Shown piece after piece: positions 14,278-53,525 of a DNA stretch of 64,000 nt. The stretch covers positions 19,406,001-19,470,000 of the forward strand of contig NC_135758.1 in assembly GCF_052425735.1 (NCBI RefSeq), read 5' to 3'. Source of the DNA: Oculina patagonica. Lineage: Eukaryota. The stretch's first letter is position 1. Each line of letters starts with the position of its first letter. The translations under genes were made by a program, and so were the position numbers. Below the pieces are notes generated by a model. That model worked only from the letters and a program-made list of their open reading frames with translations, was not told where the DNA came from and did not search any database.

Positions 14278-15333
14278 TTAGTTCTCCTGCAGGATGCTCA
14301 GCTCAATGTACTTGATGCCTTCTTTTTCTTGTGCGTCATCGCCATAAATCTCCAAAAACAGGCCATTGCGGGGATTCAACTTGTTCTGGTAAACCATTTC
14401 CCTGCTGAAACCGCCGTCTAGCGGGACGAAACAGGTTCCCCACCGGTCAGACAGGCTTAACTGGATCTCGAACCTTCCTGGGTAGTAAGATTCAGATGGT
14501 TTCGGGAGAGCAGCATCGGTATGACGAGTCATGGTCTTCCCACTGGGCCCATCGATACCCCGACAGGGGGCGGAAGATGGGTAGTTGGTTTTATCATATG
14601 TTACCATGCCAATAAAGCGTTGGCCATCAGAAATAACAAATGAAGGATCACTGTCCGCTGAACCAAATGTGGTTTCCAAACCGACCGCCATCTTGACGAC
14701 AAGGTTGGCATTTGTATCGATGACTCCTGGCGAAATCAGTGGAACGATCATCAGCCGATAGTGATTGCTTGGAGCGCTGAGGAACGTGAGTAGTCGAGGA
14801 GTGATGGAATTATGGTGATGGATGAAGGTAGCAGCTGAAGCAAGCTTCATAGGTGTGAAGAATTTGTAAAACACAAACTGGATAGAGTAAAACATATAAG
14901 AGTCAGTTATATAGCAAAGACTAAGACCTGTAATAAACCGCTAGTTAGCTCTTGAACTAAGGGCTACACTACAGATGCATTATACTACATCGCACGATGG
15001 AAGTGAAAGTTTAACACACTGTTGGCAAAAAGAGAGAGCAATGCTTAAAATTATCTCAGGCTGTTGATATAGTACTTAAGAGTCTATTCACGATTCATCG
15101 TCGCTGATTAAAGTAATTCCTCCGCCCAAAAGATAGAAACTGCTATTCTCGGCTACCTTTCTCCGCTTTCTCGCTGCTGTTGTGAACGGTTCGGTAAAGG
15201 AGAATAAAGCTTAAAGAAATTCAAGTTTTCCTTCATTTACCTGTGGCTGTTTCTTTGACGCGTCATTCTTGAGATCGTGTGCCTGGGCCAGCGATACAGC
15301 AAACATGAACAAAATGATTTTGATCAGTCTCAT
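14278..15333 (-). CDS. Secreted array protein, copy A1 (230 aa)
   Basis: Exon 1 15333-15241 MRLIKIILFMFAVSLAQAHDLKNDASKKQPQ (CAG|GTAAAT); exon 2 14877-14278; ATTAAA at 14210-14205; TATAAA at 15486-15481. Confidence 0.9.
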
Positions 15334-15480
15334 CTTTGAACTAAAGTTTCAGGACTGCTTCGGTTGAAGAACTGGTAACAGTTTGAAAACAATGAACAAC
15401 CGAACTCTGTCTTTGTGCGGAACATCAATGTATGTGATCTGACGACTCGAAAATTTTCGCGTCCACGACTCAGACATATA

Positions 15481-15486
15481 TTTATA
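15481..15486 (-). promoter_or_regulatory. Putative TATA box of A-type genes
   Basis: CCTATAAATATATG about 150 bp upstream of the ATG; conserved at 25350-25355 in copy A2. Confidence 0.5.
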
Positions 15487-17032
15487 GGCTTAAGTAATAT
15501 ATTTGGACAACGTATTCAGTCAATAGGCAATAACAGATTTTCACGGCATCGATTTAGCAAATCCATGAGAAAAATCTGGCCTTCTAAAATTTTTTGTTTT
15601 CGCGAATTCCGCAGAGATGGAAAGCTCTTCTTTCTAAAAGTATTTTCTTAGAGTGTCGATGCCATAACTACAGAAATATTTAAAAAAGAAAGAAACTTGA
15701 GTTGATTAACATATAAATTCGCCACAAAGCATGCTTTATTTGTCTTCAATGACAACCATGACCTTCTTTGATCGGACTTTCGTTTATTTTGAACATTTTT
15801 TGGGCAAGCAGTCGCTATCTAAGGCCACATCCACAAACGCTCTAAATTAAAAAATAACTTATCATAGTACCTGAAGATTTTTTTCCGTGATGGCTTGATG
15901 ATCGCTAGCTTGGCTTGGCGGTTTAAGTTGTAGTACGCGGACCAAAGCTCTTCACCCCAGAAAGCGAATGTAATGCGTGAATATTCAATCCGGTCTGGAT
16001 ATCCCTTCCACGCGATCGATTGCCACCGATCGTACGGTCCGCGTACGGACTCACCAGCCTTTGGTCCTCGAAAGCAAACTACGATTTTAAGAGAAAAAAC
16101 CAGATATGTGACGCTTAGCACTCTTAGGTGTAAATTGAGCAGGTCGGTTTAAAGCGATTTCTGCGATCGGATCACCTTTAAAAACATCACTCTGCTCGAG
16201 GAGTACATTGCAAAACCAGCAATTCGGCAAAATTGCTAATTAAAGATGGCTCGCTTGGATTTTTCAAGGGCACACCATCCCGAATTTGAACGGCCGACTC
16301 TTTACTTTCACTTCATCCATTAACCAAAGATCGGAGTGAATTTTCAGAAACGTATATTTGATTGACATCAGTGTTACCATAGCAGCGAAGTGATGATGCC
16401 ATGTTTTTTACAAAGGTTACAAAGCGCCAATGTTCTTGACATCTACGCTACATGTAGGTCTTTCAGACTGCATCGGTGACGACGAGAGGCGGCTGTACAG
16501 TCTATGGGCTGTTTAAGGTGTCTCCATACAGTTTTTTCAAGACCATATTTTCAATCAATTAAAATTGAGTGTGACTCTGGCGGCTATTCCAAACACCCTT
16601 TGTTTGATATGTAAAAGCTGTTTTGAACCGATTGGATGTTATCTTGTTTCATTTTTATTCGGTTACAATTTCTATACCTCAGTCCATAAATTAAACAGCT
16701 TTGCAGTTAGGTTTACCCAACTTTGGGATTTTAAGAGATATTTTTAGTAACTTCACAGTACAAGTACGTTTTTAAATTGTTTTGAATAAATTTGTACAAA
16801 TTTATGCTATTTTTCTGGCGTCATGAGAAATGAGTGAAGTCCAAGATGTAGAATCCAAGATGGCACTTGAAGTGCCTCATGTTGCTTAGCAACTTTACTG
16901 CTGGACATCGCGGGCTCAATCACCTCGAAGAGGAAAGGCCTCACAAGCTCTCGGATGTAAAGATTGAAAAGAGGCGGAGACCACATGGACTTCAGCGGAA
17001 AGGAATCTTTAATTTTAGACAAATAACCTGAC

Positions 17033-17072
<40 letters not shown>

Positions 17073-50700: not shown

Positions 50701-52020
50701 TCAACTCAAAGTACATAGGTTTTGTTCACTTTTTAGCCATTTTACAACTATCGCGATTCAATTTACACACCAAATTTGAACTGATTTCAGAAGGTCATAG
50801 CTCTTGTAGTATGAGTATATTTTGACAAATGAAAGTTAATTTCCAAAGAAAGAATTATGCTTATAACTTGTCATATTTTAAAAGTTAGTTTCGGCCGTGG
50901 AAATTAAGCACGCTAAACGAAAAACCAATTAAGAGCATTATTGTCAAATCGTGCCATTTTTTCTAGACGACCGAGAGAATACCTCAATTTTTTTTATCTA
51001 AGACATAATTAAACATGTGCCATAACACAAGTTATCCTCAGGCAACGTATCTCACACATTAAAGTAATAATTCGACACTAATTTTAAGTCATATCTTTCC
51101 CTTCCCCCTCCCCCTTCCTTCGTCCCTCCCCCTCCACTTTTTCCCCTACCTCTTTTTACGTCTTCTACTCAGGCTAAGATGAATCTTACACAGATCACCA
51201 ACAGAATCTTAGTTAAGGTGTTAACAAAGAAAGTTACACGATACCAGAAATTTAATATTTATTTTACGAAACTGTTTACTTTAATTTACTTAGTAAATGT
51301 GAATATGAAAGAATTCAAATATGAGTTGTACAAAGTGAGGAAATAAATCCTCGTAGTTGTATTTTACATTTACAGTAAAGCAATTTTAAAAAGTGACTTT
51401 GAAAGAAACAAGAAGAAATGAAAGAAACAAGAAGAAAAATAAGAAAAGTAGAAAGTAAGAGAAAGTGTTGCAGTTCTCATATGAGCGTGAAGCATTCTAG
51501 ATCTCGTCACCAGAGCCCGCTTTTCGTTCGGTCAGCAACAAGAAGTTTTGGAGAAAAATTTTCTTGATGAAAAGCAGCGTTATGAAATTTTGGGGGTAAC
51601 TTTCGAGCATCTTTCTTAATCAAAAGCAACTCTTTTGGATTTTTGGAGCGACTTTTGAGCACCTTTTTTTAGAAATTTCGAGCAACTTTTTGAATAATTT
51701 CGAGCAACTTGTGGAAAGCCCCAGACAAGAATGAGCGGGAAGGACAAGTAGAACACGGCTGAACAAACGAAAAGTGGGGTCCTGGGTATGTGCGTGAAGC
51801 ACAAACAGCTGCCACTAGCAGGATCTGTCTTTGTCATCTTATGTCAGTGGGAGGGGCTACCTTGTTCCTATGGAAACTATGGAAACATGGTCGTGGTGAA
51901 GGAAATCTCTGGCTGAGAACTAATTTGAATAATTATTAATAATTATACGTTATGTCGCTTAGCAACTTCGCTGCCGAGATTCTTGGGCTCAGTCACCTGG
52001 GGGAGAAACTGGAAAAGGTC

Positions 52021-52124
52021 CAAGCTCGTTCCCAGGGTCTCTCTCTCCCCGCCCACTTCTCTCGCTCCTCGCTCTTACTTTCGCTCTTGGGGGCGGGGAG
52101 AGAGAGACCCTGGGAACGAGGTTG
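52021..52124. repeat. Short palindromic interspersed repeat
   Basis: ctcgttcccagggtctctctctccccgccc / gggcggggagagagagaccctgggaacgag. Related short hairpins occur at ~13652-13742 and ~42780-42866. Confidence 0.85.
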
Positions 52125-52411
52125 GAAAACCGTAAGGCAGTAATGATGAAAGTAAGCGGAAACCACGACATTACAGAGACAAGGGAAATTTTCGACCGAT
52201 GACCCATGGGAAAGAGAAGAGAGAAGTTAGGTTTCGCACATCACTATTAAAAAAAAAGATTAAAGAGATCAGTAAAGAAGAAAAAAAATGGACGCTTGGT
52301 TTTGCTTTTAGCAAAAACTCATCTTTAATCAGATGAAACTACATTGCTCTTAACAGTGCTTCAGTAATCAGCGGAAATGATGTTAATTTTTTGTACTGGC
52401 TGCAACAGACA

Positions 52412-53525
52412 TCAGTTCTCCTGCAGGATGCTCAGCTCAATGTACTTGATTCCTTCTTTCTCTGGTGCGTGATGGCCATAAATCTCCAAAAACAGGCCGT
52501 TGTGGTGATTCAACTTGTTCTGGTAAACCATCTCCCTGCTGAAACCGCCGTCTAGTGGGACGAAACAGGTTCCCCACCGGTCAGACAGGCTCAGCTGGAT
52601 CTCGAACCTTCCTGGGTAAAACTGAGTCTCGGATGGTTTCGGGAGGGTAGGATCGCGGAAAGTATTACTCAAAGTTGTCCCACTGGGTCCTTCGTAACCA
52701 AAACATGGGGCATGATCATTGTAGTTGGTTTTATCAGCTGTAAACACACCAATAAAGCGTTGGCCATCAGAAACACCGAATGAGGGGTCACTGTCCGCTG
52801 AAGCAAATGTCGTTTCCAAACCAACCGCCATCTTGACGACAAGGTTGGCATTTGTATCGATGACTCCTGGCGGAATCAGTGGAACGATCATCAGTCGATA
52901 GTGATTGCTTGGAGCGCTGAGGAACGTGAGTAGTCGAGGAGTGATGGAATTACGGTGATGGATGAAGGTAGCAGCTGAAACAAGCTTCATAGGTGTGAAG
53001 AATTTGTAAAACACAAGCTGGATAAAATTAAACATATAAGTTACTCTTTCGGCGATTTATACATAAATCTGTTACTGATTGAGGCTTAGACTAGTCTTTT
53101 ACGGACTCTCGAATAGCGGCTAGTATCAAGGCAGACAGACAGATGTAACCTGCGATCAGGGGCATTGTATGTGCTCTATTCTCTACGGGGCTTGCGTATT
53201 TTCGCGCGACTAGCTCGGGAAAAGTATCCTGTTGGCAGAATATAAGCCTATTGACAAAAACAGCGAGAAATGCTAAAAATATTCTTTTGCTATTAGTTCA
53301 TTGTAGTTGAGAGTGTATTCGCGATTCATAATCGCTAGTTCAAGTGGTTTCTCTGACCAAAAAATCTCTCTTCTGACGGCTGTTGTAAGCGACTGCGAAC
53401 AAGGAAAAAAAGAGGTTCATAACGTTTACCTGTGGCTGTTTCTTTGATGTGTTTTCATCATTGAGATCGTGCGCCTGGGCCAGCGATACAGCAAACATCA
53501 ACAAAACTATTTTGATCAGTTTCAT
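52412..53525 (-). CDS. Secreted array protein, copy A3 (233 aa)
   Basis: Exon 1 53525-53430 MKLIKIVLLMFAVSLAQAHDLNDENTSKKQPQ (CAG|GTAAAC); exon 2 53017-52412 open; ATTAAA about 85 nt after the stop. Confidence 0.9.

Follow-up and report, generated by a model that had tools for sequence, protein, structure and literature searches.

Mosaic core exons in a tandem gene array of the coral Oculina patagonica suggest past exchange between copies

The array and its genes

We analysed a 64,000-nucleotide stretch of the genome of Oculina patagonica (contig C1:19,406,001-19,470,000), called here the window, in whose coordinates all positions are given. It contains a tandem array of gene copies that end in a 'core' exon of about 600 bp; eight such terminal exons, all on the minus strand and all closing with ...ILQEN-stop, were found by tblastn of the window with one core as query. 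An earlier reading of the sequence, the original prediction, had described these exons as mosaics of shared blocks. This patchwork is borne out by a site-order test, a breakpoint scan, tree tests and the behaviour of the non-coding flanks: the copies have breakpoints at which their relationships change, their flanks switch partners, and they belong to a lineage-specific expansion. We consider it likely, with a probability of roughly 0.85, that the core mosaics arose by past crossing-over and gene conversion between copies.

Each gene consists of leader sequence and a core exon, with two exons in the A and C types, where the leader is a single exon, and three in the B type, where it is split in two. 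In the annotated proteins P0001, P0031, P0040 and P0108, a signal-peptide leader is joined to the core at a CAG|CTTGTG splice, and the core encodes a product of about 190 residues. The eight same-strand copies lie within 42 kb and contain runs of 60 to 180 bp with 0 to 3 differences between copies, the overall divergence being 8 to 20%. All copies are collinear, and the only indels are two of one codon each.

The features that follow are all on the minus strand, and core columns are counted from the splice acceptor in a 12-copy alignment of the core exons. Copy C (core 11499-12101, protein P0108) is divergent, with about 59% amino acid identity to A2, has a leader exon of its own (13257-13331) and served as the outgroup. 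The A-type copies are A1 (core 14278-14877; leader 15241-15333, encoding a signal peptide, MRLIKI...KKQPQ), A2 (core 24176-24775, protein P0001, ACROYT_G001706; leader 25110-25202) and A3 (core 52412-53017, protein P0040; leader 53430-53525). The B-type copies are B1 (core 18222-18825; leader 20059-20583, with exons 1 and 2 at 20530-20583 and 20059-20124), B2 (core 35014-35616; leader exons 35981-36049 and 36452-36505) and B3 (core 43364-43969, protein P0031; leader 46913-47746, with exons 1 and 2 at 47693-47746 and 46913-46993). The remaining core, psi (32378-32892), is truncated at its 5' end and homologous to the others only from about column 100; further upstream (32893-33030) homology is lost and unrelated, GC-rich, repeat-like sequence starts. 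It is annotated as gene LOC144636860 (protein P0057), with a different N-terminus that lacks a signal peptide. B1 carries a 1-bp insertion near 18801 (18795-18814), 5' of the MKL codons, where the plus strand reads GGTTGTG instead of the GGTGTG of all other copies. Its core is out of frame with its leader, and B1 is either a second pseudogene or the frameshift is a consensus error.

The family is much larger than this array, with at least 80 core copies in the genome, spread over several clusters. Four paralogues on the same contig entered the comparisons: X0 (2.5 kb beyond the left end of the window), Y1 and Y2 (both on the opposite strand, at a distance of 400 kb) and Z (at 23 Mb). More distant members, 35 to 44% identical to A2, are clustered on contigs C8 (27.3 and 32.8 Mb), C9 (19.4-19.7 Mb) and C13 (32.1-32.6 Mb), the last alone holding at least 25 copies within 0.5 Mb.

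Conflicting relationships along the core exon

A site-order permutation test on the pairwise homoplasy index (PHI) detected a spatial clustering of compatible sites in sets of 6, 7, 8, 10 and 11 copies (z -3.9 to -5.9, p 0.0005-0.0015), with the window copies alone as well as with outside paralogues added. A likelihood scan of the GARD type, one of the checks proposed with the original prediction, placed the best single breakpoint of the 12-copy alignment at column 240, with a gain in the corrected Akaike information criterion (dAICc) of 143; two breakpoints fell at columns 240 and 408, and three at 240, 384 and 504. Forty simulations on a single tree with the real per-site rates gave a mean dAICc of -15.7 and a maximum of 8.9. 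The tree of segment 1 groups A1, A3, Y2 and B3 (with A2 and Y1), and that of segment 2 opposes A1, A2 and X0 (with Z) to A3, Y1 and Y2, together with B1 and B2 and with B3 and psi. Each is rejected on the other's data by the approximately unbiased (AU) test (segment 1 tree on segment 2, p 3e-4; segment 2 tree on segment 1, p 8e-5), so that, as had been supposed, no single tree fits. With the eight window copies alone the breakpoint again fell at column 240 (dAICc 86; AU p 1.4e-4 and 0.002).

Two further approaches identify individual mosaics. In a maximum-descent test of the 3SEQ type on 978 triplets, several triplets reached Bonferroni-corrected p values of 0.005 to 0.05, and they describe three mosaics: A3/Y1/Y2, with an A1/B3-like 5' part and a B1/B2-like stretch at columns 307-408; B3, with an A3/A1-like 5' part and a psi-like stretch at 315-435; and A1, with an A3/Y2-like 5' part and a Z/X0-like stretch at 308-381. 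When the copies were painted with the 66 sites at which A1 and A2 agree and differ from B1 and B2, B3 and psi stood out as clear mosaics (runs tests, p 0.0014 and 0.005). In B3 the intron is of B type as far as the splice site, and exon segments 1 and 3 and the untranslated region (UTR) are A-like; columns 121-240 resemble A1/A3 and columns 301-420 resemble psi, with breakpoints between 43789 and 43973 and at about 43738/43739. Psi is B1/B2-like at STYY and in columns 241-300, X0/Z-like at QGESDP and B3-like in columns 301-420. In A1, whose main breakpoint lies at about 14646/14647, the nearest relatives are A3/Y2/B3 in columns 121-240, X0/A2/Z in columns 301-420, and Z in the 3' UTR.

Flanks, blocks and leaders

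The comparison of trees for flanks and blocks, also suggested beforehand, bears on whether the mosaics reflect recombination or convergence. The 1.4 kb upstream of A1 is 87% identical to A2, and over its 3' flank (264 bp, 84% identity) A1 joins Z with bootstrap 99. B1 is B2-like from far upstream, where it also resembles B3, through its intron to the stop codon, and its 3' UTR is X0-like (bootstrap 98), one 60-bp window of it having 4 differences to X0 versus 23 to B2. The 3' flank of B3 is Y1-like over 517 bp (bootstrap 97), and upstream the partner of Y1 is Z. Thus the non-coding 5' and 3' flanks of A1, B1, B3, X0, Y1 and Z differ in their nearest relatives. Convergence is an inadequate explanation for such a switch in non-coding sequence; exchange within or next to the conserved core exon is an adequate one.

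The shared protein blocks on which the original prediction was built are of unequal weight. The blocks SADSDP and DKTNY do occur in B3, and they are a derived, informative state, shared by A1, A2 (as AAD), A3, B3, Y1 and Y2. QGESDP and DKNNY are likewise present in B1, B2 and psi, as is QGESDP/DKNNF in C, but QGESDP and DKNN(Y/F) are also found in Acropora, Montipora and Desmophyllum. They represent the outgroup state, and their sharing among B1, B2, psi and C is therefore retention and no evidence of exchange. Psi does share LNDQ with B3, the additional codon of SE(T/I)Q with B3 and A3, and STYY with B1/B2; its likeness to A2 at HLDAA comes down to one or two residues. Similarly, A3 has DHAPC.GYEG and RD.TLP in common with B1/B2, and its EGPSG match to A1/A2 again concerns one or two residues. 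Mosaicism had thus been partly over-read, some of the listed blocks being ancestral retention or coincidences of one or two residues.

The derived characters, which are the informative ones, are in conflict. A one-codon deletion, KTMT-RH, is shared by A1, A2, X0 and Z, a one-codon insertion, SE.Q, by A3, Y1, Y2, B3 and psi, and all four combinations of the deletion with the SAD/DKTNY state occur. Synonymous changes next to the SAD block are distributed over the copies as the block itself is (GGT..AGT versus GGC..AGC).

As had been claimed, leader type does not predict core type. B3 combines a B-like intron and leader with an A-like 5' part, 3' part and UTR, and X0 and Z have B-type leaders with a central block of the A1/A2 type. 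Moreover, B-type leader exons occur in Z and Y1 together with the relic of an A-like leader, which lies some 500 bp upstream of the core (L004 2581-2649 for Z, L006 826-903 for Y1), so that A and B leaders do not mark exclusive lineages. They are probably alternative first exons of the ancestral gene that were differentially lost. The expectation that the leader should predict the core is thereby weakened in itself.

Weighing the explanations

Several points weigh against the interpretation by exchange. The PHI signal is located in codon positions 1 and 2 (z -3.5 to -5); neither third positions nor the synonymous sites within invariant codons give a significant PHI (p 0.03-0.5). The PHI, GENECONV, 3SEQ and GARD tests were home-made equivalents and not the reference programs, and the AU tests used the same data from which the breakpoints had been picked. 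A search of the GENECONV type, proposed as a check, yielded no globally significant perfect tract among the window copies (minimum global p 0.17). When the 3SEQ-like test was restricted to synonymous changes, the events of A3 and B3 were recovered at nominal significance (p 0.004 and 0.03, respectively) with the same boundaries as in the full test, and neither survived correction for 954 tests. Finally, the unitigs of public sequencing runs included no read contig spanning a whole copy. Given the null result of PHI at synonymous and third positions, we do not rest the case on PHI, and examined flanks, indels, the synonymous divergence of segments and synonymous triplets instead. Synonymous sites support the events weakly.

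The same observations can be read without any recombination, as retention of ancestral blocks combined with parallel or convergent amino acid change in a few fast-evolving loops of a conserved scaffold. The outgroup state of QGESDP and DKNN(Y/F) fits this scenario, as does the confinement of the PHI signal to non-synonymous codon positions; several of the shared blocks are just one or two residues long, and the central segment evolves fastest, with 0.22 non-synonymous substitutions per site (dN) and a ratio to synonymous ones (dN/dS) of about 0.5. However, it leaves the partner switches of non-coding flanks, with bootstraps of 97 to 99, without an explanation, together with the shared one-codon indels at odds with shared multi-codon blocks and the synonymous changes that travel with the SAD block. 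Single pairs also vary six-fold in dS from one segment to the next: along the three segments, dS is 0.14, 0.92 and 0.14 for B3-A3, and 0.14, 0.08 and 0.22 for A3-Y2. Simulations on a single tree with real site rates never came near the observed dAICc, and dN/dS is below 1 in each segment. We regard this scenario, already strongly disfavoured by the flank data, as very unlikely. Positive selection as the main driver was also considered and rejected, pairwise dN/dS being below 1 in all segments (0.15-0.55). At the 5' end of the core (columns 1-120), mean dS over all copies is 0.12, versus 0.28 to 0.48 in the rest, a low value for which either homogenisation or constraint on the RNA could account.

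Near-identical tandem paralogues may also be collapsed or mis-joined during assembly, and the 60- to 180-bp stretches with 0 to 3 differences are places where an assembler can switch copies; the B1 frameshift, too, could be a consensus error. To this can be opposed the overall divergence of 8 to 20% between copies, the presence in other corals of A1-, X0-, B3- and Y-type combinations with about 90% identity, and contig L031, an independent assembly of a close relative, in which B-type leader exons precede a B3-like core on one contig. In addition, 24 public sequencing runs were found, and unitigs of public data were aligned over B3. Two unitigs from different studies, 43535-43758 (run X1) and 43548-43758 (run X14), have 0 mismatches to the assembly, and each carries SADSDP, DKTNY, LNDQ and SEIQ on one piece, so that the block combination of B3 is real and not an assembly chimera. 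Only short unitigs could be placed, owing to the density of high-copy repeats in the B3 intron, and read support is limited accordingly. No clean splice joint from a B leader to the B3 core was present among the unitigs placed; a loose end in run X14 at 43972 resembles a B-type leader exon joined to a core and is not assignable to a copy. That the mosaics as a whole are assembly chimeras is, in our view, scarcely credible. The B3 intron (43986-46736) is almost entirely high-copy repeat, with a summed unitig depth of 1e4 to 5e5, versus about 50 to 700 in the exon, and an RNA run (X24) gave 29 reads, all within intronic repeats.

Kind and age of the exchanges

The idea that ectopic conversion or unequal crossover in the conserved framework shuffles the variable blocks thus finds support in the segment trees, the flank switching and the decoupling of leaders. 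It calls for three refinements: the events are old, copies outside the window took part, and both crossovers and patches are involved. The exchange of flanks in A1, B1, B3, X0, Y1 and Z fits the product of crossing-over between misaligned copies. A3 and Y1/Y2, in contrast to their unrelated flanks, share a patch with 0 to 4 differences per 60 bp across columns 241-420. With the two partners separated by 400 kb and in opposite orientation, the patch fits non-crossover conversion. For each event, the choice between crossover and conversion, the direction of exchange and any selective value of the resulting block combination are what we infer from such patterns.

Adding the outside copies to the GENECONV-like search gave marginal results only (global p 0.02-0.08), and even between the closest exchanged segments the divergence is about 3% or more. 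We therefore dropped the claim of recent conversion, for which no globally significant perfect tract exists within the window. Counterparts of the mosaic types occur in other corals at about 90% amino acid identity (P0034 for B3, P0078 for Y1, P0003 for A1); P0006 is 92.1% identical to X0 and nearly as close to A1. The lack of identical tracts and the conservation of mosaic types indicate that the events are old: exchange is historical and not demonstrably ongoing.

An ongoing, high-rate or programmed reshuffling of loop blocks, in the germline or in somatic cells of a cassette-like array, would be a more dramatic alternative. It has precedents in the sea-urchin Sp185/333 genes, for which it is proposed, and in the assembly of lamprey VLR genes. 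The architecture invites the comparison: genes clustered in tandem pair a leader exon with a single mosaic exon, the secreted product is predicted to be a lectin-like jelly roll whose loops vary, and possible donors are on hand in a pseudogene and a solo fragment; array content also differs between O. patagonica and a 96%-identical relative. Yet no copy pair shares a significant identical tract, the closest exchanged segments remain some 3% or more apart, and the smallest dS over a whole core, 0.08 between B1 and B2, exceeds the 3.7% non-coding divergence from the close relative. The mosaic types are, furthermore, stable across species. The B3 unitigs match the assembly as well, although Logan contigs drop rare variants and alternative joints could escape. 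We consider such reshuffling most unlikely; no evidence for recent, somatic or programmed shuffling was seen in these data, which are of a kind that cannot exclude it.

Past exchange thus remains our preferred explanation, and the order of genes in other corals suggests how the array may have formed. Relatives of the core family are present in Desmophyllum, Montipora, Acropora and many other coral assemblies in the protein database. As far as the hits show, the family appears restricted to stony corals. In contig L032 (ENA ERZ25067872), a region collinear with the window at 54-61 kb is followed by one A-type gene, an orthologue of C and B-type leader exons. The copies from A3 to A1 fill the place of the single gene of L032, a layout expected from tandem duplication by unequal exchange, and by their position A3 appears to keep the ancestral 5' neighbourhood and A1 the 3' neighbour. 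Contig L031 (GCA_044670265.1) is 96.3% identical to the region upstream of A1, and directly upstream of A1, where O. patagonica has B1, it carries a gene with a B-type leader and a B3/psi-like core. This tentatively suggests, as L031 is a short contig, that array content differs even between close relatives.

In the history we propose, the array of O. patagonica would have grown from one A-type gene beside C to seven copies by unequal crossing-over of misaligned copies. Patch-wise gene conversion would have been added to this, also with paralogues at distances of 2.5 kb, 400 kb and 23 Mb. The exchanges would have been resolved where the core exon is highly conserved (columns 1-180, near 240, and around 385-480), and copies would for that reason join the 5' flank and leader, the loop blocks and the 3' flank of different lineages. 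The exchanged segments have since diverged by several percent. A solo fragment in the intron of C (12209-12423, minus strand) comprises the last 30 bp or so of an intron and core columns 1-192. The fragment matches A1, A3 and B3 at 95% identity, is missing from the C intron of the other coral (contig L032), and terminates within about 50 bp of the main breakpoint zone; it is likely the footprint of a partial duplication or unequal exchange.

Other sequences in the window are a minus-strand open reading frame between A2 and psi (29892-30449) with a DDE_Tnp_4 domain (Harbinger/PIF-type transposase, E 7e-17), a tandem array of units of about 200 bp, 73 to 81% identical, between B2 and B3 (39500-41700), three 196-bp units with 99% identity (9687-10293) and a short-period repeat of 15 bp (5617-5887).

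The core protein and the significance of its mosaics

Pfam gave no family for the cores at E<=1, and protein-atlas feature scores reached at most 0.89, the named clusters (PF07081 DUF1349, PF06439) being leads at best. A structure model of P0001 is all-beta, a sandwich of about 12 strands, at moderate confidence (predicted local distance difference test 69.5, predicted template modelling score 0.66), and the core protein is thus predicted to be a jelly-roll beta sandwich. The Foldseek hits, to galectin-8N and to legume lectins, were weak (E 3e-4 to 5e-3, TM about 0.3). VIA gave Z scores of 6 to 8 (best 8.2, within the background range) for phage receptor-binding domains, carbohydrate-binding modules (CBMs), TNF/C1q-like proteins and lectins, with many unrelated jelly rolls tied. 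As these matches indicate a generic jelly roll only, we assign no family. By residue numbering, the variable blocks would lie mostly in predicted loops. No description of the core family was found in the literature on the O. patagonica genome, in that on tandem secreted families of corals with gene conversion, or in searches with two conserved core peptides.

These results quantify the formation of hybrid genes where a lineage-specific expansion turned one gene into seven, within a large uncharacterised family of stony corals, and they have practical consequences. Whole-core gene trees of this family are unreliable, analyses of selection need to be partitioned at columns of about 240 and 385-408, and leader type is unsuitable for classifying its members. 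With its secreted products, predicted lectin-like jelly roll with variable loops and at least 80 clustered copies, the family may deserve study as a possible recognition family. That it actually forms a recognition repertoire of corals, serving immunity, allorecognition or the sensing of symbionts and microbes, with loops diversified by recurrent exchange with pseudogenes and fragments, is an unlikely, speculative extension; in that case copy number and block combinations should vary among colonies, and novel block combinations should continue to arise.

Comparison with known systems

The predicted beta sandwich likens the core protein to the jelly rolls of the concanavalin-A-like, galectin, CBM and TNF/C1q groups; it differs from these groups in that the core family has no Pfam match and no VIA match above the background of that aligner, and the model yielded no sugar-binding residues. 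Among cnidarians, the Hydractinia Alr1/Alr2 genes also form a clustered family, in which recombination with neighbours is thought to create new types. Alr proteins, however, are Ig-like transmembrane receptors with extreme allelic polymorphism, whereas the coral proteins are small, secreted and, by prediction, jelly rolls.

The Sp185/333 (SpTransformer) genes are similar in design: they are small, combine a leader exon with a single exon for the mature protein, lie in tandem clusters, and have a mosaic mature exon with blocks in varied combinations, for which recombination is the proposed source. Their elements are, however, blocks present or absent and repeats, while the coral copies all carry all blocks, and Sp185/333 genes are far more alike each other than the coral copies are. 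The coral B-type genes, moreover, have three exons, and a predicted beta sandwich contrasts with a disordered protein. Our sequence searches (Pfam, protein database) returned only unnamed coral proteins and included no direct comparison with Sp185/333.

Non-allelic homologous recombination and interlocus gene conversion are usual in tandem families such as the MHC, KIR, plant NLR clusters and opsin and globin arrays. The coral array shares with these its same-strand tandem paralogues, hybrid genes whose 5' and 3' flanks come from different lineages, incongruent segment trees with breakpoints in the most conserved stretches, a difference in copy number between related species, and a pseudogene and a partial copy within the array. 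It differs in being uncharacterised and in having no detectable recent tracts, so that a current rate is not estimable. Recombination here is ordinary tandem-array behaviour and calls for no new mechanism; it is the family itself that is new.

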